The notes: a model not told the origin generated them from the sequence alone. Positions 1 through 62,450 are shown, counted from the stretch's first letter. The stretch is DNA of 64,000 nucleotides from Paragordius varius (GCA_964247055.1 OZ176051.1:11966001-12030000), one strand, 5' to 3'. Numbers and translations: made by a program.

Positions 1-3000
1 ATTAACGATACGAATTTAATCTTTCACGTAATGTCGGCATATAGCGATGTTTTGCAAACGATACCTCCTTATAGGAGCTGTATTCTGGAGTACCCTAAAA
101 CTTCAGATTTTAAAGATGATAAGGTTATTTCCTGTCCTATGTATCATACCTTTTGTTTTTTTAACAATAGTTTGGACCCAACGCTTTACGTAACAATATA
201 GAGTTAACATATTTTATTTTCTTTTGACTGAATTTTCAAATGATCCTTACAATTATTTATTGTTGTTATAAAAAAGTTTGCTATATAATTATTAAATAAA
301 ATTTATAATTTAAAATATTAAGGATTTAATTATCATTTATTTATTTTTTTGGATATGATTTTTAATATTATGGAAAAACTTTAATACTTTTTTATTAATA
401 TACTTGTAAATATTTTTTATTGTAAATTTTATCATTGGTAAATTTATCAAACAAGATAGTTTGATAACCGTACTATATTCCAGTATCCTTTTTTACATTT
501 TATATTAATTATTTCCCCTTAAAGAGTATTGCCTATTACAAATTTGGGATTGATTATAATGGTACCCGATGCTTTTCGAAGCCAATTGCTATATCTCTGG
601 TAACAGAAAATGAAAACGCATACTTTACAATCAGCGACGATCACATAGAAAATTATTTTTTCAAAACAGACTTTCGCAATGTTTTACCTTTAAATGGACA
701 TTGCGCTGTAGAGATCGAACTTGATACAAAAAGGGTATTATTAATTGCAACAAACTTTAAAATTTATAGTTCTAATGTAAAGTTTAAGCATTTTTTATTC
801 TTACGATCATAATCTAAAAAGTAAAACTTGGTCATTTATATATAAAGGCAATGTTTCTCAATTATTCTTATCTCTATGATTATGATTAAGACGTTGATTT
901 ACGGATAATAAATAATATGGGCATCTATATATTATTTGGCCATGATGTAAAACGTTATAGATATATTAATATATATATATATATATATATATATAACCTA
1001 TAGATTTGCATGTTAACTTTAAATTCAACGGATAATGTAACGGACACATATGTCAACGGGCCTCGATTAATTACTATTAAAGCAATGTACAATTTAGATC
1101 CGCACTGTACCTATTTATCACATACAGCAAAAGAAAAAAATATCGATTTAAACTTTACACTTGATCGTATACACTTTGATCCTAAATCCTTAAATTGGAT
1201 GGAAAAATTAGTTATGGAATTGGGTAGACTTGGCTCAGCATTCGATATTAGTCCAAATATTATCCACGCACCAAGTTTAAATTCTCGAGTAAGTTTATAT
1301 TTCATTGATGAAATTGATGTTGACTTTTTTGTCATAGTAATTAGTACGTTAGGTTACCTAATATGTAATATACATATAAAAATACCTAATTTTACTATTC
1401 TAGATCATTCCATTTTGTTTGGTTAATGCAGCAAAACAATCATCACCATTTATTGAATCATATATGCTAAATAATAACTCAGTTAATAGAAGTTATATAT
1501 GTTTAACGATAAGTAAACCAAATTTGCCTTCTTCCGATACACGTATTAACGTTATATTTCCTGATCCTTTGGAGCATTCAAAAACTTGTAATAAATTTTC
1601 CGCGGCGGGAGATAGCACTCTATATATCTATCCTATTACACTTTGTTCATTTACTACAAAAATCAATCCAATGAAAAATGTGTGTAACTTGTGTATCAAA
1701 TATTGTGAACCATCAAACAATTATCTTTTGACCCTTGAACCTATTAATCAATCCCCTACCCTCGTAATAGGTAATAGCTGGACTCCCATATCTAAGGGAC
1801 AAGATAAAAATTTAATCACTAACGAATTGATACTTCTTTTGTCAAATGATAAAAACTTTCAACCTGTTGAAATGTTTAATCATTATTTGCCTCCCGCGTT
1901 TGAAAGAGAAGGTAATATTTCGTAACTCTGTGTTATATTTTTTGAAAAAAAATTGTTTAAAAATTATATTCCTTTAATTATAGATTTTTGAACATATTTG
2001 TGTGTCAATATATTTTATTTTGTGTAATTGGGCTCTAACTTTTTATTAGATACTTTTATTTATCTTATGGATGGGTTTTTGCATTTCATACATTTGTCCT
2101 GTGATAACGATATTGGACTTAATGCTGAGTTATGGTATCCCTACTTCTCTCAAATTCATCTGTGGATTTGTTTGCGCACTAAAAATCCTGCCAGTTTAAA
2201 ATGGATATATGGTACAATATATATTTCCGTAATTCTTGTTAAATATATTTTACAATTATGCCTTAATTTATGATTTGTGTAATTTCTATTTTGTCCATAG
2301 CTGGTTGTTTGAATAGCAATGTGGAAAAACGATCAAAGCGAAGCTATGCAATAATTGAACACGATATGGAAATAATACATTTACAAAGACCCAATCATTA
2401 TGGCATAACTATTGGCAATTATGGTCAAACCATGATAACACAAACGTCTGAAACAGGAAATGCAATTCCACACAATCGATCATATACATTAAATATTTTG
2501 GAATTGGAATTAGTCCTGGGTTCACTCAATTTTGCCACAAAAACCAACGATGTTGTTTCAAACACTGATAAAACTATATTAGTTATTGATCAAATATTAG
2601 TGCTCAAAGGCAAACAGTTACACTTGGCCCTTAATTCTATTTATTATTATGATAAAGATATCTTCATTCCACATGAAGCGCAAACTAATAGCAATGCATT
2701 AAACATGGTTAATCATGATTTCAAATGTTCTCTCAACAATTTTTGCATGTTTAATGGTATATGCCTAGCTAAATTACAGCCCAATATACTCCTACCACAT
2801 ACTAAAAACCAGTGTGATGTTAATTACAACAATAATAATAATGATAATTCCATGAAATTTACTCATGAACACAATAAAAATGGTGGTTTAGATTTCGGTT
2901 ATAATGAATTTGATACAATATGTTTCATACGACCAATGATGAATGGTGATCATGGTCACGTTAAAAGCAGTATTATAAAACACCATAGGCCTTTGGTCAA

Positions 3001-6000
3001 TTTTGATGCCAAAATCAAAGTTTATCAACATGGTAACCGCTTGGATAAAGACACGCCTTCCCCCAAATTTATTTGTTGCAAAAATATGCAATTTGTGATA
3101 GATAGGGATAATTACATTCAATTATCGCTGGAGGACAAATTTTGGTTGACATTCATTAATCACTACATGGCTTTGTACCAAACACCATTCAACCATACCT
3201 CCAAAAACAAAATCAACAATAATCCTAATAATTTATATCATTTCGGTGATTTTATGATATACCCTATTAATGTTGGGATAACCATACATTTTCATTACGG
3301 AAACATTTTTCTATCTTCCACCATAAATTCCCCGTTAAAACTTTCTCCAGTTATTTTAGATGAATGGACCACTTACATGTATTTTACAAGTTTTTTGACG
3401 GTTTGGCCTACCGAACTAGTTAAAAAGTCTATTGCCGTATATCAAAATGACATGCTTAGGAATGCAGGTTTAGTTTTTAGCGTGTTTCGTTTTTGTGTAT
3501 TAATTATTATAATTTTTTTCTCTTAAAACAATCGTTAATTAAATCTAATATTCTTATATTACTAAGATGCTTTCTTGTATCCCCCCATCATATATCAACG
3601 TACAAAACAAAATATTTTTTGGTCTTTAGGTTGCGAATGAGTTTTTTTACTAATACTAAACCGTTTTTTATGTATAGCATGGATTCTTGGTTCCCTTGGT
3701 ATGTTTGGAAGTCCTGCCATTGTGGTCTCATCTTTAAAGGAATGCATTACGTCCATATTTCATACTGACAGTAACATTAATAATAGTAGCTTACAAAAAT
3801 CATTAGTTTCAAAGGATGATATTGATTGTAATGTTTCAAAATTTTCAGCGTCCAAAAAACATGGCGGTATCTACTCCCAAACCATTTACGATGACTTAAA
3901 TCTCAACATTTCACATTTCGATTCCACATCTGGCACTTTAAATCTCCCAAAAAAGATTGTTAAAACCCTGACAACATGTAAGAATGCTTGTTGTTTTGTT
4001 ACGAAGTTTTGATGTTTTATGATAGGGATGTCGAACATAAATGGCTTCGCGGGTCAAAAAACCCCGGCGGACCGCATTCAGAATATATAGGGGCATTTAT
4101 AAATAATTCATTAGTTGTCAAACACAAGACTTTAAAATTCAAACACAATATAACAATTTTTTCTACTCTTGCTAATTGAATAGGCTTATTCACAAAAAAT
4201 TGTTTATGAAATGTCAATTTTATTGAGATTCTCGCGAGCCATACATAAAGTCTCACCCGTTTATAATATATTTTTCTCTTTCCCTTTCTAGCAATATTAT
4301 TGTCCCTGTTTAATTTTTGTAAAAACCTTAATCGCAATCTGGACGCATTAACCTTTGACAGTGTTCACACACAGTATATGAAGGAACGGCGAACTAGTCA
4401 ATGGAAAAATATAAAGTTCCATTCATTATCCAATTGTAGTTCAGAGAGAAATGCATCACCGATTTCCGCAGCTAAACGCAATTTTATGACGGGATTTTCG
4501 GATATGGGTTTTGGTTTTATAGGTAAATAAATACAGTCATTTATCCTTTGTTTTATCAAAAATTTATTTTTTTTCGTTGAATGAGTATAAATATTTGTTA
4601 AAGAATAGAAAAAACAAGACTCTATGGTATTAACAATATCATATTCATCAAAAAAGTATAAAATTACCATAGCGCTCTTGTTTTTTACCCATTCTTTAAC
4701 AAATATTTATACCCATTTAACAAAAAAAATAAATTTTTGATAAAAAAGGATGCATAACTGTATATAAATATTTAAATATCCAATGCAAGTTTTGAGAACC
4801 AATTAGGTATGGGAGTAAAAATTGAAATTATACAGACGATGTGTGAAAACATAAAAAATATTTAATTGAGTTGTGGGTAACGACGAGGGTTTGAAATGTA
4901 AATGATGTGGAAATCGTCGTAAAATAACGGAAAATAAAATATAATTTATTGATTATCAAATTTTCGCTATAGGGGCATCATCATCAGGCGATTAGTTAAG
5001 AAAATAATATATATATATAATATATAAGACAATAAAAATTAAAAAATGAACAAAATCCTGATTGGTATTACTTATTTAGGAAAAATTTACAAAAGAAAAA
5101 AAATCACAAAGAAACCGTTGTGATATAAAATAATCAAATGTGCATTTTAAAATATAATTAATTTTAATGCTATAAACAAAGTAATAATTTAATTAAACAA
5201 TATAAACATAAAGTATTAAAATTTAAGTAATAACACTGTAAATTGGTTTGTGAGTAAAAATGTGATGATTCTTAATAAATGATTTAGTTTCAGGGTTTAT
5301 ATCATTCTTCTCTTCACGACGATTAAGTTAATCATCTTGTGCGCTCTGTATTAAGAGTGCTTCTTTTGTTATCCTTGAGTTGTGCTTTCTTTTTACGGCT
5401 AAAACGTCGATTGTTTTGAGCACTCATGGTTGTTATCCACGCAAAGAAAAATGGCCGAATATTTTGATGGTTCTTAAATCTTACTTTTATATTTCACTTC
5501 GATTGGCCTATGTAAATTGCTGGGCAATTCTTGCATTTAAACTTATATACCGCATTTTCCATTTCTCCCTCCTTAGACCTAACATCTTTAGAAGGTTCGA
5601 TGTCGGTTTATAAACCACTTTTATGTCATCTTTCTTTTTTAAAATTCTCCTGAAACTTTCTCTCTTGCTTTTATTACAGCCATCCCATCTCTCCCACAGC
5701 AGCCTCACAATCAACGGACGAAACTATTCATCCTTCCGGAAAGATCAATCGTATAAAATTTGCTTGCTTACCCTATAGCGCTACATCAGAAAGCTTGGGA
5801 AATTTTAAAAAAAGATGGCATAAAAGTGGTTTTTAGATCGATTCAAACGTTCTAAAGATGTTAAAATCTAAGGAGGTGGAAACGGAGAATACGGTGTATA
5901 ATTGAAATGCAAGAATTGCCTAGCAATTTACATAAGCCTATCGAAGCTAAATATAAAAGTAAAATTTAAGGAGCATCAAAAACGCAAATATTCAGCCATG

Positions 6001-8105: not shown

Positions 8106-8818
8106 ATGGATATTTTGTTATTTTCTCATTTTAGCATATTTTTCATGCACCGTCTTATATTAATGGTTTTAAATTTTTTAGTAAAATTTATATATGTTTT
8201 AAAAGGAATATTGAACATGATTGACACAAATAAACAACATGTTAATACCAGCGAATTGACCGCAGAATCCTTAGTATTTGAAATCAATATGGAAGAGAGC
8301 TTTTATCAATATATGCTTCATGCATGGCACATGCGAAACAAGTTTTTATTTTTTTTTCCGTTATTAGGCCTAAACTTTTTTTCCAATTTTTACACTCACT
8401 CATTTAATTTTTTAGATTAAAAAAGTTTTGGGGAGATCACCTTATTATACCTGTGGGAAAAAATATTTTACCCCTATCACAACTCACATTTGTCCCACCC
8501 AGCTATAATGCTCATGAAGAAAACGCTTATTTTTTAGCTTTTAACATTTTGCGGGATAGCCTGAATGGCCATCACAAAAAATTATATATATTTAAATTCC
8601 CTGAACCAGGAACACTCATGCCATATCGCATATATAACATATTTGAACTATCTCTCATGCGTAAGATATTGCCATTAAAGGATGGGAATTTAGAGTGTCA
8701 TTTTACCTTATCAGCATTTGATGAAAACGAATACAAAAAGGAATGTTCGATAGATAACAATTTGGAAGAGGTAGGAGCTATTCTTACGCTATCAATATTT
8801 TTGATAAATGGCATATAA
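8106..8818 (+). CDS. Probable terminal exons of the VPS13B-like gene (unresolved)
   Basis: Open frames at 8106-8420 and 8453-8818 lie on the same strand downstream of the last confident exon. No recognisable motif, and the splice path through 7465-8450 could not be resolved. Confidence 0.3.
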
Positions 8819-10209
8819 AAGTCATTGAAAAAATTAAGCAATTATATATTAATCATATATCCTTAAATTATTCGTGCACCAATAAATATATTTATATGCT
8901 AAAAGATAAATGTTTTTTTTCAAAACAACCATATTTTTTCAAACTTTGATTTTTCCCAAAAATTTATTACAATTAATTTTATAGAATTTAAATTTTTAGT
9001 TCCCGTTTCACAAACTAAACGATGAGTTTTAATTAAAACATAATTTTTACGTATTTTGTATTATTTTAATTTTAACTTGAATGTCTAAAATTTGATGGAT
9101 TATTTAATTTTATTAGTCAGGTTATATTATAAAATATAAGTCAACGTATAATGATTATATGGCACTTGTTTAGAAATGCCACGAACCAAAATGTAGCCTG
9201 TAATAAGATTATTAAAATTATTTTCACAAAAAGCGGTTCAACTGTTAATTATATCAATAAACTATAATTCAACCTTATAATCTAATTTTTTAATTCAATT
9301 TTAGAATGGAAATATATCGATTCAATCGCTTCTCGCTACATTGGATGAAAAATATTTTAGTGTGAGAAATGAGCTCCATTTTTTTAATTTATCACGAAGG
9401 GAATTTTATGCAATAAAACATTTTTTTGATTCACTCAAATATTTAATTTATACAGAAACACATTATAGCAATATTAGTAATGAATAAATTTTATATCTAT
9501 ATTATTTTAATAAACGATATGAAATTAACAGTATTTGTTGCTCATAAAACCGAAATCCAGGGAATTTTTTTGAAAAACCGACAGTTTACTAATCATACTG
9601 TGTGCCACAAAAATCTGATTTATTTAGGAAGCCTTTTAAACACAATATCAGCCCCTTAAACAAATCAATGTTTATATTTAATTTTTATATTTTTAATTGC
9701 ATTTAATAAAAGTTAAAATAATAAATATTTTATTTTAAGTATTAATTTTATTTTATCAAGTTAAATCAACGGAAAAATTAAGTTGTTAAATGATGACAAT
9801 TTGATAAATTTTGGAATTTATTATTAAAAAGCGCTTCGTTTAAATTTATATACTATCGTGGTGTTTTATTAACCAAAGCGTAACATAAATATTAAAATTT
9901 TTAATTATGTAATTTGTTGTTGCTAACCATAATGGTACTAGAAAATTGGATGTTAAAAAATTATATACCGATGGTAAATTAATTTTTTAATGTTCCATGC
10001 CATTTTCGATATTTTTATCATATTAACAATTGATACCACACCCTTTGTTTTCAATATTTGATTTTCAATTTTGTCGATTATTTATGTTTCTAAAATTCAA
10101 ACGTATGGTAAAAAAATAGTTTTGCGCTATGGCTAATGGTATCAGCAAAATCGAATGTTGTTTTGGTTTTATCCCCAAGTTTTTTGGTGATTTAAATATT
10201 ATCATAAAC

Positions 10210-15954: not shown

Positions 15955-16448
15955 ATATGTTTTTTTACATTCTTGTTTGCCCAATGAATTTAGACACATA
16001 TAGTTCTTGAATAGTTTCTTAATTTTGTCTTCCGTAAGCTGTTTTAAATTTTAGGTTTTGATGTGAATATTTAATTTGTTTACAAAATGTTTTGAAACAT
16101 TTGCATGCATAATTTTTAATTTAGCAGATAAAATATAACTTTATCATTTTATTAAAATTTTCTCATGGGGATTTTATTGTATATAATAATATATTTTACT
16201 AAGTTATACAGATGTTGAGAAATAGAAAAGATTGCATATTTATATTTCTAGTGTTTTGCTCTAAAACAATTTGGGCAAACTACGTGTAGAAAACAAATTA
16301 TTTCCCTAATAATATATCTTGACATATCGTTAATTAAAGATCCAATAGGAGTCAATTATTTAGATTGATATATAACGAGACACAAAACAAACTCAGACAA
16401 TAAAAATTATGAAATTCATAAATAATGCACGAATAATTTTTTCAATTT

Positions 16449-16640
16449 ATCGCTTCTCTGGCTTATTAGCTATGATCGATTGTGTAGTATCTGTTCTTAT
16501 CAGCTTAATATCTGATATGGTTTCTCATTGAAACCCGTGATATTAAATCATTTTTTGTAGGTTTTGGGGATCGCTCTAGGCTTGCCTATCAATCCTCAAA
16601 CGGGTCAACCTGGTATTGCACTATATCCAGGAGTGGCCCA
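16449..16640 (+). ncRNA. U2: U2 snRNA, full length (divergent)
   Basis: Contains the 5' ATCGCTTCTC, branch-point recognition GTGTAGTA, stem IIa TATCAG..CTGATA, Sm site ATTTTTTG, stem III, and stem IV with loop TATTGCAC, in canonical order over 192 nt. Confidence 0.97.
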
Positions 16641-16661
16641 ACAATTATTATAAATAAAATA

Positions 16662-17657
16662 GATCAAATGGGAATTCATCGATTCCTCTCCCATATTAAT
16701 AGTTGATAATAAACGACTCAGTATCGAACAACGTTCTTCAGTAGTTTCCATGCTCAGACGCTCTCGGCGTGCGCTAAAAGACGCAGAACTCCATCACTTT
16801 GCCCTACAAGGACGAGTGATGGAATGCGTAGCCGCCGATCGAGCCAGCCATTCCTTTCTCTACACAGGAGAACACATGAGATTTCGTGATTGGAAATTCA
16901 TCCATCGCGCCAGGCTCAATCTCCTCCCCACAAATTCCCGCAAACACGATCCCACACTTAAATGCCGACGGTGTGGCAAAGACAATGAAACCCCCGCCCA
17001 CGTCCTCAATAATTGCTTGAAAGAGAGCAACTTAATCACCAAGAGACACAACCTTATTGTAAATAGGATAAAAGACGCACTACCATCTAATTTCGAAATC
17101 ATCAACGAGAATGAGGTAGTTGACTCATCTCGTCTTCGTCCTGACCTAATCGTTACCGATGGAACATCGTGCTTCATCATCGATCCGACGGTACCATATG
17201 AAAATAGGATTTCCTCTTTCCATCATGCTGCAACAAACAAACTTATCAAATATGAATCCATCGCCAATGGACTACGAGAGCGCTTCAACGATGTCGAAGT
17301 CATACCAATCGTCGTTGGATCTCTGGGTTCCTGGTACTGCAACAATGACGTGATATTCGACAGAATTCCAATGAAGACCCCAAACCTCTTAAAGAAGCTG
17401 ATCATATCAGACGTCATCAAAGCGTCATGCGATATGTTTCACTACTTTATGAGTGGACGAAATGAAACAAACAATACAAACATCTCTTCATAATTTATGT
17501 TTTTTTTATTTTATATTATGCAATTTGCATCATTGTTCTTCTACAATTTCATCCATATTCACTCAATAATTGTTAGATAGGCCACTTGCATTTTCGTATT
17601 CTCTTTTCAGATTCTCAATCTACAAATATTAAAAATATATATTACTCTATAATAAAT
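16662..17657 (+). mobile_element. Utopia-type RLE non-LTR retrotransposon, lineage A, 5'-truncated
   Basis: Uninterrupted ORF 16750-17493 with a CCHC knuckle (CRRCGKDNETPAHVLNNC) and RLE motifs RHN, RPD, IIDPT and K..KY. The 3' UTR ends AATAAAT, joined to U2 nt 40 (TATCTGTTC), matching the U2-targeting habit of Utopia. Confidence 0.93.
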
Positions 17658-17810
17658 TATCTGTTCTTATCAGCTTAATATCTGATATGGTTTCTCATTG
17701 AAACCCGTGATATTAAATCATTTTTTGTAGGTTTTGGGGATCGCTCTAGGCTTGCCTATCAATCCTCAAACGGGTCAACCTGGTATTGCACTATATCCAG
17801 GAGTGGCCCA
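17658..17810 (+). pseudogene. U2: U2 snRNA 3' fragment (nt 40-192) downstream of a Utopia insertion
   Basis: Identical to 16488-16640. It lacks the 5' 39 nt. Confidence 0.95.
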
Positions 17811-17870
17811 ACAATTATTATAAATAAAATAATTCAGAATATCTTATCCCTTCACTTTTTTTAATAATTT

Positions 17871-17987
17871 CGTCAGCCAACTGTTTAACATAATTTACAG
17901 CATTAACACGCTTATTCAAGTACAGTAAACGCCTAAAAAAGACCTCTTTAGAGGTCGTATCAGATATTAAGCTGATAAGAATAGAGA
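17871..17987 (-). pseudogene. Variant U2-like 3' fragment (class B), copy 1
   Basis: TCTCTATTCTTATCAGCTTAATATCTGATACG (U2 stem IIa), then hairpin GACCTC-TAAA-GAGGTC, a U6 tract and two further hairpins. It directly follows a Utopia-A 3' end. Confidence 0.7.
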
Positions 17988-18177
17988 ATTTATTATAAAG
18001 TTATATAAATTTTTAATATAGATTAAGAATCTAAAATAAGAATACAAAAATGCAAATAGCCTATCTAACAATTAAAGAATGAATATGGATAAAATTATAT
18101 AGGAACATTGATGCAATTTGGGTAATATAAAAATAAAAAAACATTAATTAAGAAGAAATGTTTGGATGTGTGGCCCC
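17988..18177 (-). mobile_element. Utopia lineage A 3' UTR remnant
   Basis: The reverse complement aligns with the 3' UTR at about 17480-17657 and with 22573-22747. Confidence 0.85.
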
Positions 18178-21100
18178 CTTTTGGTTATATATTAATTATC
18201 CGGGTGATTAGGAATTTATTTATTTCCATTCTTTAATCCTTTGGTCCATCTAAATTTCTTTCCAGTATTATATATTGTTTATTTTTATAGATATGATATC
18301 AACCAACATTATTAGCTCCAACAACGTACAAATCATGTTTCGCCTTACAATAAGTGATAATGATAATCAACCAGTGTCCTGCAAGACAACCTTCTGCCAT
18401 ACCTCTGTCACCACGGTCAATACTCAAAGCCATCTATCATTCTGTGTCAACCCGTCGACAACTCCAACACCCGATATTGGCTCTCTCTATGAACACCAAT
18501 TCCCTTCACTCTCTTCATCTCAGTTCTACGACAACGTGTACACAGCTACCAATCAGTCATCCAATCAGGCCAAATCTCCCAGCTCAAACATTAAACGCAA
18601 GACCATCCTTGATCTTGCCCATCCAGCCAACAAAATGCTTAAGATAAATAATAATGATGATGATAATGATGGCGACCTATTGGAGGTGATGCCACATCAA
18701 CCTACCCTGCAAGACAAAACCCTATCCTTCTATTTCCCTTTACCGAATCACTTTTTATGTCCGTTTGAATCTTGCAATCATCAATTTCGTTGTAAATCCT
18801 GGACTGCCCAGAGACAGTCTCTTCTACGTCATATTAAGCTGGTCCATAAAGAACTAATCAAAATAGTTAATATTTGCAAACCTTGTAACAAAGTTTTATC
18901 TATTCACCCAAGTATACATATGAAAGAGTGCATTTTTGCGTCCAAATCTCCTATTTTCCAAATGCCTCACGCATGTGATGCGTGTGAAATGTCGTTTCCC
19001 AAGCGCATGTCTCTCTTATCTCATAAAAGGTCTCATAATCTACCTCCTCATCCTCACAGTAAACCGTTAAGTTTGTCAAACCTCCGATTCAATCCGTCTA
19101 ATAAGCCTAAGGTTGTCGAGTCATCTCCAACCCACAGTAAACTTTTTTGATCCACCCAGCTCTCCAGTTAATTCTTCTCCTACCAAAGTGAGTGGGACCT
19201 CAAACATCATTGGTAAGGGACATGAAGGCAATAATTTCAGTACGGATATTAATTCCAATATTCTAAATCCCAGTAGTTCGGTAAACAAAAATTATTTTAA
19301 TTACTTTTCTCAGAATGAAGTCTCTTTCTCTAATCGTTTTACAATTCTTGAGGAGAGTATTGATGAGGAACCCACTTCATCGGTTACTCTACCTACACCA
19401 AATAAAAGTTTTAATAAATCATCTGCTTTAAATAAAAATACTTTTCCTTTCACTAATTTTAATAACCTTCTTGACTCCCACGACGAGAATTCCGACTGGA
19501 AGGATATTTGTTCTTTAATAATCTCTATTCAAAATGCAATATCTCCTCCCCGGGCTGATTATAATAAGTCTAAAAGTTTGGTTCATAAAGATTTAAATAT
19601 TCGAGCATGTATAAGAAAAATAGGAAAAAGGCTATAAGATTAATCGTTGATGGCCCTCCATCCCTCTGTAAAATTAATAACGAAGATATAACAAATTATT
19701 TTAACAATACAATTGGCAAAAAATCTGAGCCTATTAATTTTAATTATTCTAATAATTCTGTCCCTTTACTTGATTTTATTCCCTTTTCAGCATCTGAAGT
19801 TTCTGATAAATTAAGAAAAGTTTCTAACAGCTCCCCTGGTCCTGATGGTATTTCATATACCAAATGGAAGCAGGTGGATCCCAAAGGTATTCTTTTATCT
19901 AAAATTTTTAATTTGTGTTTAAGTCATAGAATGATTCCTAATCATTGGAAAGTAACTAAGTCAATCTTAATTTCTAAAAAAAAGGGAGACCCTTCTCTTG
20001 TTTCAAGCTGGAGGCCCCTTTCACTAAGCAATACTATTTATAAATTATTTACTGGCCTTATTGCCAACCGAATTTCTAAACATATTTTAAAGAATAACTT
20101 ATTATCATCAGCCCAGAAAGGATTTATGCCGGCTGCTTTGAGCATAATTATATTTTAAATAAATCAATTTCTGATGCTAAACATAATAAAAAAGATATTT
20201 TTGTAACCTTTATTGATATCACTGCTGCGTTTGACTCGGTCCCTCACCAGCTGATTTTTGAATGTCTCCCTAATTTTGGTATAGATAATAATATTCAAGC
20301 TTTAATTAGGGATATTTACACAAATTCATGTACTCAGTTCTTTTCCGCCTCTGGGTTAAACCCATTCCTTTCTTGTCTGGCATTAAACAGGGGTGTCCAA
20401 TTTCTGGCCTTCTTTTTAATTTGTCAATCGATTCTGTGTTGAGATCTATGGTGTTTAATGGTCACAATGTCCTCGCTTATGCTGATGACATTGTTTTATT
20501 GTCTGACTCTCCTGAACGTCATCAAGTTGGGCTCAATTTGTTAGAATTTCTTATTCATGATATTGGTCTTTCGATCAAAGCTGAGAAGTGCAATAGTATT
20601 TCTATTGCTTCTTGTAGTCCTGTTTTTAAGATTGGTGAAGTTGTCGTTCCCTCAATCGGTCTAGGTGAGTTTGTTAGATTTGAAAGCCTGTAGGTCTCAA
20701 TTTCATTAATCCCGTTCCTTCTACGGAAATTGTGGATAAAATACATAGTTCTAGCCTCCTCCCTTGGCAAAAGCTAGACGCTATTAAAACTTTTTTTATC
20801 CCACTATTTCTCACCAGTTGAGAAGTAATGAGCTTAAAATGGTTACAGGTGAATATCTAGATAAAAGCTAACTAAAGTGTTCAAACAAATATTAAATCTT
20901 CCAAGAGACGCCACTAACAATTATATTTTTGGCTCTCGTAATAAGGGCGCCTTAGGGATGCCCCTATTCCGAGATGACATTAATATATTTCGTGTGGATT
21001 CCGCTTTTAAATTACTTACTAGCTTAGATCCTTCTATAAGAGTTTCTGCTCTAGAGGAACTTAAGGTTTCGGCTAGCTTCCGTTTTAAGGTTCGATTAGA

Positions 21101-22223
21101 TTCTATAATTCCCGATCAATTAGGCAAATATTTGTCTGGTTATGAGAACCCTCTTGTCTCAAATCCAGCTAATAAATGCCAAAACATTTGGACAATAGCG
21201 AGAATTGCGTCTGAATCTCTCAAAATTTCCTGGTCTTTTGATGATTCTTTTCAGCCTACAGTAATTACAGACTCTAAAATCTCCCAAGACAATCGCTCAG
21301 CTGTTGTTTCTATCCTTCGATTTTATAAACGAAAGCTAAAGGATACTGAGCTACACCATTTTGCTTTGCAGGGTCGGGTGATGGAGTGCGTTGCTGATGA
21401 TAAGGTCAGTCACCATTTTCTTTACAATAATAAGGATCTTCGCTTCAGAGACTGGAACTTCATCCATCGAGCGCGGCTCAATCTCCTTCCAACGAAAATG
21501 CGACTCAGGTCGTCTGAACAAATGTGCCGTCGCTGCGGCAAATCGAAAGAAACCCAAGCCCACGTTTTAAACCACTGCCTCAAAGATGATAATATAATAA
21601 CCAAAAGACACAACGTCATAGTAGACTTGATTAAAGATAATCTTATATCAAATTTCAAGTTAAGTGAAAACCAAGCCATCGATTCGTCGAGAGTACGCCC
21701 TGACCTCATTGTAACAAATGGCACTGATTGCTATATCATCGATCCCACAGTGCCGTTTGAAAACAGGCTAGAATCGTTCGAAACGGCGTTCAACAATAAA
21801 TTAATGAAGTATAGCTGTATGGCTCAACAATTACAGGAAACATACAGCAACACCCAAGTCATTCCAGTTGTTGTTGGGAGCCTCGGCTCATGGTATTCGA
21901 AAAACGATGTTCTTTTTGAGAAGATCAGGTTCCGATGCCCTAACCAACTAAAGAAATCAATAGTTACAAGCATAATAAAATCTTCAGCCGACATGTACCA
22001 CATGTTTATGAGCGGTCGAAATTCCCTCATAGACAACAACCCATCAAATGCATTTTTGTAATATTTTTTATATATATATTTTTTTTATTATATTTTTTTT
22101 CTATATTTATATATAATAATTTTTTCTTTCTTCCCCCTTGTAACTTCCCCATGCCCAATATTGTTGCGTAGCACTTTTCTTCATATATTCTAAATTGTAT
22201 TTCTTATATATATTAATAAATTA
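18178..22223 (+). mobile_element. Utopia-type retrotransposon, lineage B, near full length, frameshifted
   Basis: Three N-terminal zinc fingers (CPFESC..HIKLVH, CKPC..HMKEC, CDAC..HKRSH), RT motifs (PGPDG, WRPLSL, QKGF, GIKQGCPISG, YADD), a CCHC knuckle and an RLE, spread over several frames. The 3' end joins U2 nt 40. The 5' boundary is approximate. Confidence 0.93.
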
Positions 22224-22376
22224 TATCTGTTCTTATCAGCTTAATATCTGATATGGTTTCTCATTGAAACCCGTGATATTAAATCATTTTTTGTAGGTTT
22301 TGGGGATTGCTCTAGGCTTGCCTATCAATCCTCAAATGGGTCAACCTGGTATTGCACTATATCCAGGAGTGGCCCA
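22224..22376 (+). pseudogene. U2: U2 snRNA 3' fragment (nt 40-192) downstream of Utopia B
   Basis: 153 nt with two C>T differences from the full-length U2. Confidence 0.95.
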
Positions 22377-22440
22377 ACAATTTTATATACAAAATAAATT
22401 AATCCCTTCACTTCTTTTAAATAATTTTAATATAAATTAT

Positions 22441-22572
22441 CGTCAACCAACTGTTTGAAATAATTTACTACAGCATTAACACACATTTATTCAAGTACAA
22501 TAGTTTACCGTGAACGCCTAAAAAAGACTTCTTTAGAGGTCGTATCAGATATTAAGCTGATAAGAATAGAGA
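22441..22572 (-). pseudogene. Variant U2-like 3' fragment (class B), copy 2
   Basis: Homologous to 17871-17987 with indels in the distal hairpins. It follows a Utopia-A 3' end. Confidence 0.65.
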
Positions 22573-25500
22573 ATTTATTATAAAGTTATATAAATTTTTA
22601 ATATAGATTAAGAATCTGAAATAAGAATACAAAAATGCAAGTGGCCTATTTAACAATTAAAGAGTGAATATGGATAAAATTGTATAGAAACAATGATGCA
22701 AATTGCATAATATAAAAATAAAAAAACATAAGAAGAAATGTTTGGATTGTTGTTTGTTTCATTTCGTCCACTCATAAAAAAGTGAAACATATCGCATGAT
22801 GCTTTGATGACGTCTAATATAATCAGCTTCTTTATGAGGTTTGGAGTCTTGATTGGAATCCTGTCGAAGATGACGTCATTGTTGCAATGCCAGGAGCCCA
22901 GAGATCCAACGACGATCGGGATGACCTCGACATCATTGAAGCGCTCTCGCAGTCCAGTGGCGATTGATTCGTACTTGATAAGCTTGTTTGTTGCTGCCTG
23001 AGTAAGGATAGCCGTTCATATGGTACCGTGGGATCGATGATGAAGCAGGATGATCCATCGTGACGATTAGCTCCGGGCGCAGGCGGGATGCGTCAACTTC
23101 TTGATTCTCGCTGATGACTTAAAAGTTTGGTGTGTCTCTTGGTTATTAGATTGCTCTCTTTTAAACAGTTATTTAGAACGTGGGCGAGGGTTTCGTTGTC
23201 TCTGCAACATCGTCGACATTTTAGTGTTGGGTCGTGTTACCGAGAATTGGTGGGGAGAAGATTGAGACTGGCGCGATGAATGAATTTCCAATCACGGAAC
23301 ATGTGTTCTCCTGTAAAAGGAAAAGAATGGCTGACCCGATCGCAGCTACACGTTCCATTACTCGTCCTTGCAGGGCGAAGTGATTAAGTTCTGCATCTTT
23401 TAGCGCACGCCGAGTGCATCGAGACTATGGAAGAACGTTTTTCGATACCGAGTGGTTTATTATCAACTATTAATGTAGGAGCGGAATTGATAAATTCCCA
23501 TTTGATCTTAAGGATCTTAGATGATTTACCTGCCTCTGTCTAAGGGTTTTGAGCTTTGTTGCTAGGGTTTATAACGTCCGGATTGTCTTTGCCGGAATGA
23601 TAGGAAGCCATATCCTCATGAATTGGGTTTTTAACTTTTAATCTATAAGCTGAATCTATTCTAAATATATGCATGTCATCCTTTAGGAGAGGCATGCCGA
23701 GAGCACCTTTGGGCCTGAACCCGTAGATATAGTTTGTGGTGGCGTCTCTTGGAAGAGCCAATATTTGTTTGATTACTGTAGTCAATTGTTTATCTATTGC
23801 ATCGAAATATTGTAATTGATTTGATTAAAGCGCAGTCTGTGCATGAGTCTGGGATAATAGAATGTTTTTATAGCGTCAAGCTTTTGCCAGGGGGCCAGCA
23901 TTTTTGCGGGATTTCAGTATTTGCGGCAGGTCTTTCAATGTCCAACCCAACCGGGTTACCCAAGAAGTTTGTATATTCTTGGTGTTGTAAGGTTCTAATA
24001 ATGCCATCATCAATCGAGAACTGGTAATTGGAATTAAGGCAAAGGGTGACACACTTGGAGGAATTTATGGTAAGACCGATTTCACTAAGGAGGGATGTTA
24101 GTCGGTCAAGCGCTGCTTGGTGGAGATGTGGGTTTGGATAAGCAAGCCATATCATCCTCATACGCAAGTATTTGGTGACTGTGATTACTCATTTTCTCAA
24201 TTATTGAATTAACGGCAACGTTAAATAAGGTGTTGAGTGAGCCTGTTGGATGCCGGAGAGGAGCGGGATTTGGTTTGTCAGTCCATGGGATGTCATGAAA
24301 GCTGTGGATGAGTTTGTATAGATATTTTTAAATGATATTAATGATTAATGAAGCTTTCGGATAGGCCGAAAAGGGTGAGGCCATTGAAGATGGCTTGGTG
24401 TGGAAGGCTATCGAAGGCAGCAGCTATATCGCATGTTATGTACAATGGAGATTTACTGTGCACCGCTGTTTTTATTTGAAGCACCCATCGTAGGGGAGGA
24501 AACCCTTCTGTTTGGGAGATATGAGATTATTGTTATTGGTGTATTGGATGATTCGATCTGATAAAATGGCTGTATTTGTTAAAGAGATTGGAGGCCACCC
24601 AATAATTTTGCTCAAATCTTAGTTCTTTTTGGGAACCAAGATCGAGATGGAATTCCAAGCATCAGGTATGCGTTGGTGATTGAGACAAATATTGTAAATT
24701 GCTGAGAGTAGTTTACCATTATTATCTATTTTTAACGATTTGTGATGCCGTCATTGCCGGGGGAAGACTTTGGCATTTTTTTCAGCTTGTCGACTATTGT
24801 GTTTGGCAAGATTAGCTCCATGTCTGAAACATTGTCAGGGAATGTGACTGCAGGTATCGAATTTAGCGTATAAGAACGTTTGATTAAGGATTTAAAGGGA
24901 GATTCAATCACTTGGGGATCTATTTCACATACTTGAGCGGGCCATCCATGATAAGAAGCATCGCCTTTCATCAATTGAATCGGTATAGGTTTTGTAGGTA
25001 ACGTGGGTTAGTATTTTTAGTTGAGAATTTCTTGGGATTGTTTTGAGAAGAACGAGGAGAATTGTGGTAACGGATGATATCATCCAATATTTCCTCGAAT
25101 CTGGCCCAGGGATCCGGGTGAGAACTGATATTATTTAATTCGTTGATAAAAACAAGTGGTTTGTCATTATTATCAGGTATCAAGTAGTTTGACCGGCCTT
25201 CCAAAGGAGGGGTAATAGAGTGTAGTGTGTCTGGTTCAACTTCGCAAATATTCGAAATGGATGTAGCATCATCCTCGATTGAATATTGGAATATTGAAAA
25301 CTTATTATTGCAGGTGATTGTATCGCTAGCGTTAAAAGTTTGTTGGGGAAACTTGCGACAGTGACTTTTAACTGGGGATTTCTGTAGAAAGAGTTTGTTA
25401 TCAGGATTGAATTTGGTATCAAGAAGCGAGATCGCTTTCTCATGATGGCGTAATGGAGCATTATAGGAACGAATATGATGATCCAGATTACTTTTTTGGG

Positions 25501-25578
25501 ATATGTATTGCCGCAAATGTTGCATTTGTGCGGGAATAGAGTTTTAGGGAGCTCGTGTCAGTTAGGGCACGATTGTAA
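22573..25578 (-). mobile_element. Utopia lineage A, degenerate, reverse orientation
   Basis: Minus-strand fragments of ZnF3 (PHKCNIC..HHIRS), RT (PGNDG, YADED-like motif), LALPRDATTNYIYG, CCHC/RLE and the 3' UTR, ending at the class-B U2-like target. Many stops and frameshifts. Confidence 0.88.
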
Positions 25579-25582
25579 CTTT

Positions 25583-27097
25583 GAATGTCCATTAAAAATT
25601 GTAATCATATATTCCGAGCCAAGAAATGGACGGCTCAACGCCAATACCTTCTGAGGCGCCTCACCCTAAACCACAAAAAATTTATGATAAAAGTCCGGAA
25701 TTATTGTAAACCTTGCAATTTAGATGTGGAATGCTATCCCTCATCCCAAGATTTCATGTCACTCCATAGACTGACAAACCAAATCCCGTTCCTCTCCGGC
25801 ATCAAACAGGGCTGCCCACTCTCTGGCATCTTATTTAACGTCGCCGTTAATTCAATAATTGAGAAATGAATAATCACAGTCACGAAATACTTGCGTATGC
25901 GGATGATATGGCTTGCTTATCGCCAAACCCACATCTCCACCAAGCAGCGCTTGACCTACTCACATCCCTCCTTAGTGAAATCGGTCTTACCATAAATTTC
26001 TCCAAGTGTATCACCCTTTGCCTTAATGCCAATTACCAGTTCTCGATTGATGATGGCATTATAAGAACTTTTTAACACCACGAATATACAAACTTCTTGG
26101 GTAACCCGGTTGAGTTGGGCATTGAACCTGCCGCAAATACTGAAATCCCGCAAAAAATATTAAATCCCAATCTGGCCCCCTGGCAAAAGCTTGACGCTAT
26201 ACAAACATTCTATTATCCCAGACTCATGCACAGACTGCGCTTTAATCAAATCAATTATAATACTTCGGATGCAATAGATAAACAATTGACTACAGTAATC
26301 AAACAAATATTGGCTCTTCCAAGAGACGCCACCACAAACTATATCTACGGGTCCACAAAGGTGCTTCAGCATGCCTCTTTTAAAACACATGCATATATTT
26401 AGAATAGATTCAGCTTTCAAACTGCTAACCTCCCGCGACGAATCAATTAAAACAGAGTCGCTTGCCGAGCTCTCAAAAACAATAGCCTATGGATTAAAAG
26501 TTAAAAACCCAACTCCGGAGGATATGGCTTTCTATCTTTCCGGCACATACCCGACGTTACAAACCCTAGCAACAAAGCTCAAAATCCCTGGACAGAGGCA
26601 CGTAACATCTCAGTTCCGTAAGATCAAATGGGAATTTATTAATTCCTCTCCCACATTAATAGTTGATAATAAACGACTCGGTATCGAACAACGTAGTCTC
26701 GATGCTCAGACGCACTCGGCGTGCGTTTGAAGATGCAGAACTCCATCACTTCGCTCTGCAAGGACGAGTAATGGAATGTGTAGCTGCCGATTGGGCCAGC
26801 CATTTTATTTACAGGAGAACACATGAGATTCCGTGATTGATTTATTCATTGCGCCAGGCTCAATCTTGTCCCCACCAATTCTCGAAAACACGCAAGTCTG
26901 ATGTCGACGATGCGGCAAAGATAACGACACCCCCGCTCATGTTCTCAATAACATCTTGAAAGAGAGAAATCTAATAACCAAGAGACACAATCTAATTGTA
27001 AATCGGATCAAAGAGGCGCTACCACCAAACTTCCAAGTCATCAGCGAGAATCCAGAAGTTGACGCATCTCGTCTGCGCCCTGACCTTATAGTCACAG
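25583..27097 (+). mobile_element. Utopia lineage A pieces: ZnF1-2 segment fused to an RT-to-RLE fragment
   Basis: 25583-25746 encodes C..KNC..KWTAQRQ..H..CKPC. It joins through CTCATCC to the RT region (GIKQGCPLSG, YADD) and runs to RPDL near 27080. No 3' UTR or U2 follows. Confidence 0.85.
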
Positions 27098-28500: not shown

Positions 28501-30402
28501 CACAGTGCGCACAAAAAAATAAACAAACATGATTTTTATCTAGAATAATAAGAATTCCCTTGGAAAAGGAGACCCCAAAAATTTTGGGGCAAAAATGCGC
28601 CCCAAAATGGAAATATTCCATTTTTTCATTTTTGACTAGAAATAGATTTTTGTCCAGCAAACATGATAAAAACCTAATATATTCTTAAGAAAAATAGATA
28701 AAATTATTTTAAAGTATCAATAATTTTTTTTATTCCACAAAAATGGGAATTGGTAAATTTTATGACATTGTCGAAATATATTATAAAAAAATTATTTGTA
28801 AGAACTCCATATTGTTTTGATTATTTAAGTTTATGACTTATATATAACATACCAAAGAGTTGGTATATATAATAAAGGCTATGTATCCTTTTTAGTCCCT
28901 CAAAAAATTTGTATTTTTTGAAAAAATTTTCGCGATTTTTGTTGCATTTTCCTCACATGCTTCTCACTGTTTCATAAATACAGTATCAGTATCAGTAGTC
29001 GGCAATTTTCAAAGAATACTGAAAAAACCAATAAAACTTCAAGATTATGAAATTCCCATTACATTACTTTGGATAAATGTTTATATACTATTTAATCTAT
29101 AGATAATAAATTTAATTTAGGACCTCTTGATATACAGAAAGCAGCATCGGAAATATAGCTTTTTTTTGCTATATACACTATATTTAGCTTTTTAAGTAAA
29201 ATTATATTTGTATTCACGTGTATTTTCTTCATATAATTTTAGTTACAAAATAGAATTTTCCTTGCACCAAAATTATTCTGACATTTGTAAATAATCTACT
29301 TCCAGAAACTCTATTGCCAAATTATAAATCGAACAATTATTACAATTATTATATATATTGAAAAACTGATAATAAATGGATTTATTTTTATTCGATAGAA
29401 TTTTTAGCATTCTTTTACAATAAGAATATTTTATTAGGTTTCTATAAAATTTTAAAATAAAAATGTTCCGGTCTTATAAAGATATTGTCAAATACAAACT
29501 TCGTTTGCAAAAATCCTGCAACATCTCTTCAAGTCTAACCCAATAACAATACTTAAAATACATATAAGCATTTAAATTTATTTATACATAATGAATATAT
29601 TAGCCAGACATAAAGTGATTCCAATAGTATTCACCAACTATTGAAACTAGTATAATTTTTTCTATATGTTTAAGCGTTTGATAGAACCGTTCTCCATCCT
29701 GGTCTGTAGCCCTCCACCGGAATTAGTATAATTACCTTGCTGTGGGCTCATATTTCCTTGTAATGAACTAATTTACCAGTAAAATACATGTTGCAATAGG
29801 TAATTATTTGTTCAGTAATTTTAATCAAATTTGTAGGGCGATGATACCTTCCACATACATAGCAGAAAAGGTTTTTGGTTTTTTCAGTATTTTTTGAAAA
29901 TTGCGGATTACTGATACTGTATTTATGAAACAGTGAGAAGCATGTGAGGAAAATGCAACAAAAATCGCGAAAATTTTTCAAAAAATACAAATTTTTTGAG
30001 GGACTAGGATACATAGCCTCTATTATATATACCAACTCTTTGGTATGTTATATATAAGTCATAAACTTAAATAATAATAACAATATGGAGTTCTTACAAT
30101 TTTTTTCATAATATATTTTGACAATGTCATAAAATTTACGAATTTCTATTTTTGTGGAATAAAAAAAATTATTGATACTTTAAAATAATTTTATCTATTT
30201 TTCTTAAGAATATATTAGGTTTTTATCATGTTTGCTGGACAAAAATCTATTTCTAGTCAAAAATGAAAAAATGGAATATTTCCATTTTGGGGCGCATTTT
30301 TGCCCCAAAATTTTTGGGGTCTCCTTTTCCAATGGATTTCCTATAATTCTAGATAAAAATCATGTTTGTTTATTTTTTTACCCCCCTTTTTTGCGCACAG
30401 TG
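28501..30402 (-). mobile_element. Chapaev3/CMC-like non-autonomous element with about 530-bp inverted arms
   Basis: TTA|CACAGTGCGCA ... TGCGCACAGTG|TTA, a TWA-type TSD. Arms 28501-29030 and about 29870-30402 are inverted homologues. The minus-strand FCYVCG..IT..YF..G resembles the Chapaev transposase N-terminal domain. Confidence 0.6.
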
Positions 30403-61209: not shown

Positions 61210-62450
61210 ATACTAGCGTAAATCTCGTGCTGCTACGCAGCACGAGGAAGTCCTTTGGACTTCTGGGGGGGGGGGGGAAGGTAGCTCCTTACCAAGCAGC
61301 TATCATTAAATAAACGGTGGACTAAAATTTTAGCTTTTTAACAGGGAACGTGGAATCCATATTGAATTTTTACGGTCTCATACCTAGGGCGAAAAATCGA
61401 TTCAAAAAATTATTTTTGTGGACTTTGTTTTTTGAAAAAGGTGGCATTTTACGGGGGGAGCGGGTAAAAAGAGGGCCTAAATCAAAAAAGTGGCTCGACT
61501 ATGTTCAGCGCAATCGAAAAAAGTAAACAAAAATTATATTTGAAATTGAATGGTCCAACACGTTCTCCGGAAAATTGTCTCAAAGACACGATTTTTGTGG
61601 ACTTTTTTTTTTTTTGAAAAAAATGGCATTTTACGGGGGGAGCGGGTAAAAAGAGGGCTTAAATCAAAAAAGTGAGTCGACTATATTCAGTGCGATCAAA
61701 AATAAGTAAACAAAAATCATATTTGAAATTGAATGGTCCAACACGTTCTCCAAAAAATTGACTTAACCTATTTTTCACACGGGGTGGGCCCAAACTGGGG
61801 ACCTAATTCCAAAAAAGGGCGAAGCTATTGTCTGGACATTTATTACAGATTATTCGATATTTATATTTTATAGGGTTCACCGGTTTTTCAGAAACAGATC
61901 ACAAAGTTACATGAAAAATCAGTTTTTAGCGGGTAGCTCCTTACCCAGCAGCTATCATTAAATAAACGGTGGACTAAAATTTTTGCTTTTTAACAGGGAA
62001 TACGTGGAATCCATATTGAATTTTTACGGTCTCATACCTAGGGCGAAAAATCGATTCAAAAAATTATTTTTGTGAACTTTGTTTTTTGAAAAAGGTGGCA
62101 TTTTACGGGGGGAGCGGGTAAAAAGAGCGCCTAAATCAAAAAAGTGGCTCGACTATGTTCAGCGCAATCGAAAATAAGTAAATAAAAATCATATTTGAAA
62201 TTGAATGGTCCAACACGTTCTCCGAAAAATTGTCTCAAAGACACAATTTTTGTGGACTTCTGTTTTCAAAAAACCGTTTTTCATACGGGGTGGGCCCGAA
62301 CTGGAAGCCTATTTCAAAAAAGGGCGAAGCTATTGTCGGGGCATTCATTAATGATTATATTTTTTCGAAGTTTGGATTTGATTGGGTCTACCGGTTTTCC
62401 TGTACCAGATCACAAAGCCAGCATTTTCCATTTTTATAAATATATAGATT
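61210..62450. repeat. Helitron-like non-autonomous element with nested tandem repeats
   Basis: Starts ACTAG followed by a perfect hairpin CTCGTGCTGC-TAC-GCAGCACGAG. Two long units (about 61280-61920 and 61932-62420) contain about 180-bp sub-repeats (61415, 61593, 62068). The Helitron assignment is inferred from the end structure only. Confidence 0.5.

Follow-up and report, generated by a model that had tools for sequence, protein, structure and literature searches.

The stretch of DNA analysed here, referred to as the window, covers 64,000 nucleotides of the Paragordius varius genome (GCA_964247055.1, OZ176051.1:11966001-12030000; C2:11966001-12030000 in the contig names used here) from an assembly of 110 Mb in 44 contigs. 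It carries a full-length gene for a variant U2 small nuclear RNA (snRNA), referred to as U2v, which is followed, after 21 nt of 3' flank, by a 5'-truncated retrotransposon of the Utopia type (element A), and the element is followed in turn by a second copy of the greater part of the same gene. Utopia elements are retrotransposons of the non-LTR type (without long terminal repeats) with a restriction-like endonuclease (RLE) that target U2 snRNA genes (Kojima and Jurka 2015, PMC4640811). The features are listed in Table 1, and positions are those of the window unless a contig or another locus is named.

A repeat comparison within the window reveals that the two segments bracketing element A are identical at 174 of 174 positions, each comprising U2 nucleotides (nt) 40-192 and 21 nt of 3' flank. 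A perfect duplication of this length had been claimed in an earlier reading of the sequence alone (the sequence-only reading), which also placed the insertion at GTGTAG/TATCTG, and both claims are borne out. The repeat starts exactly at U2 nt 40 (TATCTG), the preceding base being the G of GTGTAG on the left (16487) and the last base of the element, a T, on the right (17657), and the 3' end of the element abuts U2 nt 40 (TATCTGTTCTTATCAG). Nucleotides 1-39 of the U2v gene belong to the original target and nt 40-192 to the left copy of the duplication. The right copy is joined to the 3' end of A as target-primed reverse transcription (TPRT) predicts. The junction of A has 1 nt of microhomology; the last base of the repeat, 17831, is an A that could belong to either partner. 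Rfam also reports U2 as 'full' at 17635-17816 and at 22199-22382, but what it matched there is the 3' part of the gene, and the first 39 model positions were forced onto element sequence. A second RLE recognition site at the end of the duplication was considered and rejected, the weak resemblance to the target lying 6-8 nt too far downstream.

The upstream region of ~490 bp in front of U2v is homologous to that of a second U2v gene, situated 32 kb upstream and referred to as locus 1, with 57 mismatches in 511 columns (87% identity over 724 nt when the U2 part is included). The sequence-only reading had a complete U2 surviving with its upstream region and 3' trailer. The full-length U2 and the native upstream region are present, but the trailer is incomplete and the 3' box is missing from it. 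The last base of the duplication is the first one of AATTCAG, the probable snRNA 3' box, so that the left copy holds everything up to the box and the rebuilt U2v gene is without it. What is intact is the RNA-coding part and the promoter of the rebuilt gene, not its processing signal.

Table 1. Features of the U2v locus and full-length U2 genes of the genome (window coordinates unless a contig or locus is given)
Feature	Position	Strand	Remarks
U2v upstream (promoter) region, native	15957..16448	+	Homology to upstream region of second U2v gene, window -15897..-15400
Full-length variant U2 snRNA gene (U2v)	16449..16640	+	Rfam RF00004, 155 bits, model positions 1-192; Rfam match 16449-16646
Left duplication copy	16488..16661	+	U2 nt 40-192 and 21-nt flank; stops just before 3' box; element A next
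Element A, 5'-truncated Utopia-type RLE non-LTR retrotransposon	16662..17657	+	996 bp between the repeats
Right duplication copy	17658..17831	+	U2 nt 40-192 and flank of original target, joined to 3' end of A
Probable U2v snRNA 3' box, AATTCAG	17831..17837	+	After right copy only; left copy runs into element A
Canonical-type U2 stub (nt 40-84)	17941..17987	-	C2:11983941-11983985; 98% to canonical U2; attached to inverted Utopia 3' end
Inverted 3' end of A-related Utopia	17988..18167	-	180 nt; with 17658-17987 forms left copy of B's duplication
Element B, Utopia of a different, still active family	18172..22223	+	5'-truncated by ~416 nt; frameshifted
Right copy of B's duplication	22224..22750	+	U2v nt 40-192 and flank; stub of canonical U2, inverted; first part of element C, inverted
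Variant U2v genes, two	16449..16640 (this locus) and locus 1, 32 kb upstream (L001:4601-4798)		Whole-genome search
Canonical U2 genes, full-length, two	C3:526751 and C1:15223126		Whole-genome search
Divergent U2 gene, full-length, one	C4		Whole-genome search

The coding frame of element A extends from 16663 to 17490, followed by a stop codon at 17491-17493 and a 3' untranslated region (UTR) at 17494-17657, and its 276 codons are open from the junction onward. The frame matches residues 932-1162 of an R2 protein (9nl3) with an E-value of 8.6e-17, a region with a CxxC...H...C (CCHC) knuckle and a restriction-like endonuclease with the RPD motif, and it also gives a weak PD-D/ExK-type match in Pfam (PF15518). 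The reverse transcriptase and the N-terminal zinc fingers are absent owing to the 5' truncation, and related copies in the region extend further 5' than the start of A at 16662. The same junction between element and U2 is found in another Utopia of the window, element B, and at ~35 other U2 3' halves that start at nt 38-42. With the U2 site and both the CCHC knuckle and the RLE found, A is assigned to the Utopia type. The earlier description of a 996-bp, 5'-truncated Utopia insertion agrees with the site, with the CCHC and RLE match and with the relatives that extend further 5'.

Element A is the only member of its group that is free of frameshifts. When compared with the consensus of its four relatives it shows 17, 6 and 66 differences at codon positions 1, 2 and 3, whereas the private changes of the relatives are flat over the codon positions (e.g. 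16/12/19). This bias towards third positions, set against the flat private changes, indicates that purifying selection kept the lineage of A active at a time when the other copies were decaying. The nearest DNA relative in the whole assembly is 84% identical, and the nearest open reading frame (ORF), with 85% protein identity, carries a stop. The two repeat copies are identical over all 174 nt, even though the right one is a fragment of a dead gene. Element A is a young, separate retrotransposition, best explained as a recent, dead-on-arrival copy of an active Utopia lineage. The recency claimed by the sequence-only reading is upheld by the perfect repeat, the open frame and the third-position-biased changes. 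The possibility that A is a segmental-duplication copy of D', an element of the paralogous locus with 84% identity and similar flanks, was rejected, since A alone is open-framed and has the 17/6/66 bias.

The 3'-box motif was derived from snRNA genes of this genome by comparing their 3' flanks. At a distance of 13-26 nt past the mature ends of U1, U2 and U5 genes there is an AATTTAG or a near variant. AATTTAG or AAATTAG is found 13-17 nt after four U1 genes with differing spacers (L023, L024, L025 and L027), and the motif also follows canonical U2 at 17 nt and one U5 gene (L036) at 26 nt, as well as a third U2 type (L017). The U4 flank carries a looser version, AAATTAAG. The motif is often embedded as AATTTAGTTT (L023-L027, L036, L003, L004, L017 and window 17831-17837), and its background in the window is 0.0003 per nt, with ~0.008 expected per 25-nt flank. 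AATTTAG is likely to be the snRNA 3' box of this lineage, as a candidate that is unlike the vertebrate consensus. The 3' box is an Integrator signal 9-19 nt after the coding region (PMC11125478), and Integrator cleavage has been placed upstream of it (PMC4526738). The endpoint of the duplication is where the Integrator-cut pre-U2 should end, if the motif is correctly identified. Under a uniform null over the 500-1300 bp spanned by the other duplications, the probability that the endpoint falls this close to the edge of the box, to within a few nt, is ~0.01. The trailer of 21 nt matches the flank of the target itself without a difference and has 3 differences from that of the U2v gene at locus 1, so the acceptor carried the sequence of the target gene itself and any RNA acceptor came from this very gene, plausibly as a nascent or local transcript.

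Searches of the whole genome with both U2 types, canonical and variant, have identified only five full-length U2 genes (Table 1). About 35 further U2 pieces start at nt 38-42 and represent genes split by Utopia; most belong to a cluster at C3:248-527 kb or are situated close to chromosome ends. Judged from these pieces, Utopia has destroyed a large part of the U2 family. The fold of U2 is retained in U2v, scoring 154-155 bits in Rfam against 178 for the canonical genes. The two U2v genes differ at 3 of 192 positions and their upstream flanks show ~11% mismatches, and this low divergence with respect to the flanks indicates that the variant is constrained or homogenised. The evidence suggests that U2v is a second class of U2 and is functional. 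In U2v, stem-loop I and stem IIa are changed, with compensating changes, and the stretch just 5' of GUAGUA is altered. A search for U12 found nothing.

A catalogue of junctions has been made for ~33 of the U2 ends and 12 of the U1 loci of the genome. Ordinary junctions are found at at least 10 loci, where the U2 5' piece ends at nt 36-39 and abuts the 5' end of the element and the 3' piece starts at nt 38-42. Nine of these copies are full-length (L005-L008, L011-L013, L015 and L017). An 868-bp 5'-truncated Utopia of another family (L014) lies between U2 nt 1-39 and nt 39 onward without a duplication, which shows that truncated copies can have ordinary junctions; it occupies 8129-9222 on the reverse complement of C4:6452-16451, near the contig end. 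The absence of a duplication in the ordinary copies indicates that the normal top-strand cut is local and that a stagger of 174 nt is not the usual behaviour of the enzyme. The long duplication is an exception and not the usual insertion mode of Utopia. The sequence-only reading had allowed that ordinary U2 nt 1-39 junctions elsewhere would make this locus a one-off. Such junctions do exist, one of them in a truncated copy, but the locus is not strictly a one-off, as element B has a duplication of ~510 bp. Among the catalogued loci no junction of U2v nt 1-39 with an element exists, and all three U2v 3' halves belong to long-duplication events. Survivorship is the simplest reason for rare products to remain at a constrained gene of two copies, and insertions destroying U2v genes have probably been removed by selection.

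Element B, which lies 0.5 kb downstream of A, is 96.1% identical to the element of L005 from position 422 onward and 96-97% identical to the family of L005-L008 and L017, the other copies of which start matching at window 18172. It is preceded by a 4-nt filler, GTGT (18168-18171). Its RVT_1 (E-value 5e-5) and zf-RVT matches are weak and below the Pfam cut-offs, and intact ORFs of 1278-1411 aa occur in related families of the genome. The duplication around B consists of 17658-18167 repeated at 22224-22750 (aligned as 17650-18171 and 22214-22750). Its copies differ by 30 substitutions (~6%) and by indels, and B differs from the L005 element by 2.8%; as ~6% is about twice the latter value, the repeat is roughly as old as B. 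The idea that the repeat is older than B, taken from its 88% identity, was rejected, the difference consisting mostly of indels and the substitutions being roughly consistent with the age of B. It is probably an insertion-coupled duplication with a modest excess of divergence in its non-U2 part. The sequences place B first, with a ~510-bp duplication that would have rebuilt U2v, and A later as an insertion into the rebuilt gene.

At locus 1 the segment from -15360 to -14178 occurs again at -7879 to -6529, a repeat of ~1.2-1.35 kb from U2 nt 40 onward around a head-to-head pair of elements. Little weight is given to this case because the pair shares ancestry with the C/D pair at 22573-27095. 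The duplications vary in length (174 bp, ~510 bp and ~1200 bp), and no constant length at every insertion has been found: at least 10 copies are without one, five of them of the family of B, while B has ~510 bp and A 174 bp. The ordinary junctions made elsewhere by the family of B indicate that the duplication is not a fixed property of the enzyme. Locus L016 (C3:341723-351722) was rejected as a further long duplication, with 733 nt at 88.5% identity but an intervening 5.5 kb without similarity to Utopia coding sequence; its direct repeat of ~700 bp (2638-3341 and 8991-9706 on the reverse complement) starts at a Utopia/U2 junction and has a 200-bp Utopia tail inside. Pairs of U2 halves 1.1-1.3 kb apart at C3:507234/508482 and at L019/L022 are old, with unknown sequence between them, and have not been counted. 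Head-to-head inverted Utopia pairs of several families are found at 22573-27095, at L001/L002 (-14160..-7880 and -7377..-2472) and at L010, L019, L021 and L022. Such pairs resemble the 'snap-back' junction class of the R2 protein in human cells (PMC11331408).

The analysis shows the anatomy of the locus and where exactly its boundaries lie, that A is young and arose independently, and that the endpoint coincides with the 3'-box motif. We consider it an evenly balanced judgement that the structure is due to a jump of the reverse transcriptase onto pre-U2 RNA, followed by annealing of the cDNA end to U2 nt 1-39. Element A would have been inserted by TPRT at the standard Utopia site, between nt 39 and nt 40, in one of the only two U2v genes. 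The bottom strand would be nicked and the last 996 nt of the Utopia RNA copied, after which the reverse transcriptase would leave this RNA, broken or abandoned at that point. Synthesis would then continue on a second template that had the target's own U2 sequence and ended at the 3' box, most likely the Integrator-cleaved, 3'-extended pre-U2 made at the same gene. If the pre-U2 were copied to its 5' end, the last 39 nt of the cDNA would be complementary to U2 nt 1-39, and this end could anneal to the upstream half of the cut target and prime second-strand synthesis. The product would consist of a full-length U2, joined without a seam to its own promoter, followed by the truncated element and the old U2 3' part. 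Enzymes of the R2 type extend cDNA on a second RNA ('extra template'), and R2 5' junctions form mainly by annealing of the cDNA to the upstream target (PMC11331408; PMC13580325). The RNA model needs normal enzyme cuts only, and it explains the endpoint of the duplication around A. The nature of the second template as RNA and not DNA, cleavage by Integrator at that point in this species and the annealing of the cDNA end are the inferred parts of this model.

Several findings weigh against a jump onto pre-U2. Copies derived from RNA and from DNA would look the same in sequence, and the coincidence of endpoint and 3' box is seen in a single event. The box was recognised by conservation alone, with an uncertainty of several nt in its 5' limit and in the site of Integrator cleavage, and the other U2v copies match the motif poorly. 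No second junction between an element and the 3' end of a pre-snRNA is present among the ~33 U2 3' ends and 12 U1 loci. DNA and ORF comparisons revealed no master copy of the lineage of A in the assembly; the missing active master may be lost, may be on the other haplotype or may be unassembled. The duplication around B ends in the inverted Utopia 3' UTR, ~330 bp beyond the box and with filler, an endpoint that a processed pre-U2 does not explain, so that a DNA-level route or a jump onto read-through RNA would exist as well. A polyadenylated read-through U2 RNA was tried as the acceptor for B and is not supported: although an AATAAA precedes the endpoint by ~30 nt, the junction shows no A-run. 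The pre-U2 template jump, one of three mechanisms proposed in the sequence-only reading (the others being a far-downstream second-strand nick and recombination), is in keeping with the duplication around A, which ends at the edge of the box. It is not in keeping with the endpoint of B, and the lengths vary, which that reading regarded as a sign of repair at the DNA level.

These points bear on a duplication at the DNA level during insertion, that is, a long target-site duplication in which the target DNA itself was the second template or primer. We judge this a serious alternative, although probably not what happened. It might have come about by a break of the top strand 174 nt downstream, by extension of the upstream top-strand end through strand displacement over nt 40-213 with a subsequent switch to the cDNA, or by priming of the cDNA 3' end on the nearby top strand. 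Element B speaks for it, with its ~510-bp duplication from U2 nt 40 at the same locus and a divergence consistent with its age, as does the duplication of ~1.2-1.35 kb at the paralogous locus 1, which also starts at nt 40. The variable lengths would be explained along with B, and the ordinary junctions in the family of B fit an outcome that is not fixed by the enzyme. R9 elements, too, make a long duplication. A few R2 junctions with 28S duplications have been ascribed to top-strand cuts outside the preferred site (PMC2718515), and 'snap-back' priming on a nearby DNA strand has been documented (PMC11331408). The DNA-level account gives no reason for an endpoint at the first base of the 3' box, which would be due to chance (about 1%) or to a protein roadblock. 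It also needs a duplex of 174 bp to be opened, or a break far from the normal top-strand site, which is within a few nt of the bottom nick, and just 1 nt of microhomology is present at the junction.

Repair or recombination after the insertion is improbable in our view. After a break close to the junction of U2 nt 1-39 with A, an intact U2v would have been copied from nt 40 onward into an ordinary split gene, with joining inside A and deletion of its 5' part; the homologue, the sister chromatid or the downstream half would have been the template, with synthesis stopping after 174 nt. In another form, a deletion would have occurred within a former tandem pair of U2v genes kept identical by gene conversion. 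The region is highly rearranged, with head-to-head dimers, stubs and segmental copies between loci 32 kb apart, the 1-nt microhomology is compatible with end joining, and U2v appears to be homogenised or constrained (3/192 differences against ~11% in the flanks). Such a history requires two or three events where one suffices, and on it the endpoint would be unrelated to the 3' box. A tandem U2v has left no trace, the upstream region occurring once per locus, and the dead, unconstrained right copy is still perfect, which argues for a duplication as young as A, whereas the older half at 22224-22396 differs at 5 of 174 positions. An assembly artefact, in which reads of an interrupted and an uninterrupted U2v were misjoined, is very improbable. 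A perfect repeat in a repeat-rich region would be prone to such an error, but the 44 contigs of the 110-Mb assembly imply the use of long reads, for which 1.3 kb is easy to span. Each of the two junctions is unique in sequence, the left copy is continuous with the unique upstream region and the right copy with the unique flank, and the older duplication around B, of the same architecture with diverged copies, cannot be a collapse.

R9 of bdelloid rotifers, described by Gladyshev and Arkhipova in 2009, reportedly makes a duplication of fixed length, 126 bp, at every insertion. The elements described here are like R9 in being site-specific, RLE-type and associated with an unusually long target-site duplication, and are unlike it in that most copies have no duplication and the long ones differ in length. 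With published Utopia elements they share the U2 insertion point, a 3' flank from (TA)TCTGTTCTTATCAG onward and a C-terminal CCHC knuckle with the restriction-like endonuclease; the 3' flank given in the original description is TCTGTTCT... (PMC4640811). As in Nasonia, split U2 genes outnumber intact ones, and as in the Utopia of arthropods most copies lack a target-site duplication. The published duplications are 0 bp in arthropods and 20 bp in reptiles, and copies with a 5' truncation were described as lacking U2 flanks (PMC4640811). Element A, in contrast, is 5'-truncated and lies between the copies of a 174-bp duplication by which the target gene is rebuilt as a whole. A Utopia with a target-rebuilding duplication is absent from that paper (PMC4640811).

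The locus is comparable to the mammalian U6-L1 chimeras (PMC4476161, PMC11838501), in which a full-length snRNA is fused at its natural RNA 3' end to a 5'-truncated element; here the 3' end of the snRNA part corresponds to the candidate end of pre-U2. The chimeras have been explained by a jump of the L1 reverse transcriptase from the element RNA onto the snRNA during TPRT (PMC4476161, PMC11838501). L1 has an enzyme of the apurinic endonuclease (APE) type, unlike the RLE type of Utopia. The U6-L1 chimeras occupy random sites and contain dead U6 pseudogenes, whereas the jump considered here would have taken place inside the acceptor's own gene and would have rebuilt it at a real promoter. A recurrence of the U6-L1 kind, with several chimeras sharing an snRNA endpoint, was not found among the ~33 U2 3' ends and 12 U1 loci. 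For R2, both proposed steps have been seen when PRINT was carried out in human cells, where they gave 'extra template' and 'anneal' junctions, although with engineered templates at 28S rDNA (PMC11331408).

It may be, and we put this forward tentatively and with less than even confidence, that the reverse transcriptase of Utopia jumps onto the precursor transcript of its target, that the chimeric cDNA rebuilds U2 and that both U2v genes owe their survival to such insertions. Site-specific RLE retrotransposons are thought to survive on highly redundant targets such as rDNA. The target described here is unusual as a gene family whittled down to five whole copies, and the locus has at least two insertions (A and B) that leave a whole U2 gene in place. 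If the proposal is true, it offers a natural mechanism for the coexistence of an essential low-copy target and a specific parasite, and the flanking repeats would also make it possible for recombination to excise the element cleanly at a later time. A jump onto RNA, if real, would be a natural R2-like example of extension on a second RNA together with 5' joining by annealed homology, seen so far in engineered R2 systems. We know of no described natural event that combines the extra-template and anneal steps and restores the target. Both steps matter for gene insertion tools based on R2, where the fidelity of the 5' junction is the main unsolved problem. The RNA-jump reading predicts a pre-U2 3' end at the endpoint of the duplication. 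The analysis also provides, for a little-studied animal lineage, a candidate 3'-box motif (AATTTAG) and evidence of constraint on a structurally compensated variant U2.

Other repeats of the window are unrelated to Utopia. They include an inverted repeat of 527 bp with 94% identity (28513-29039 and 29868-30379) and tandem or direct repeats of ~170-335 bp with 90-96% identity at 61280-62417.

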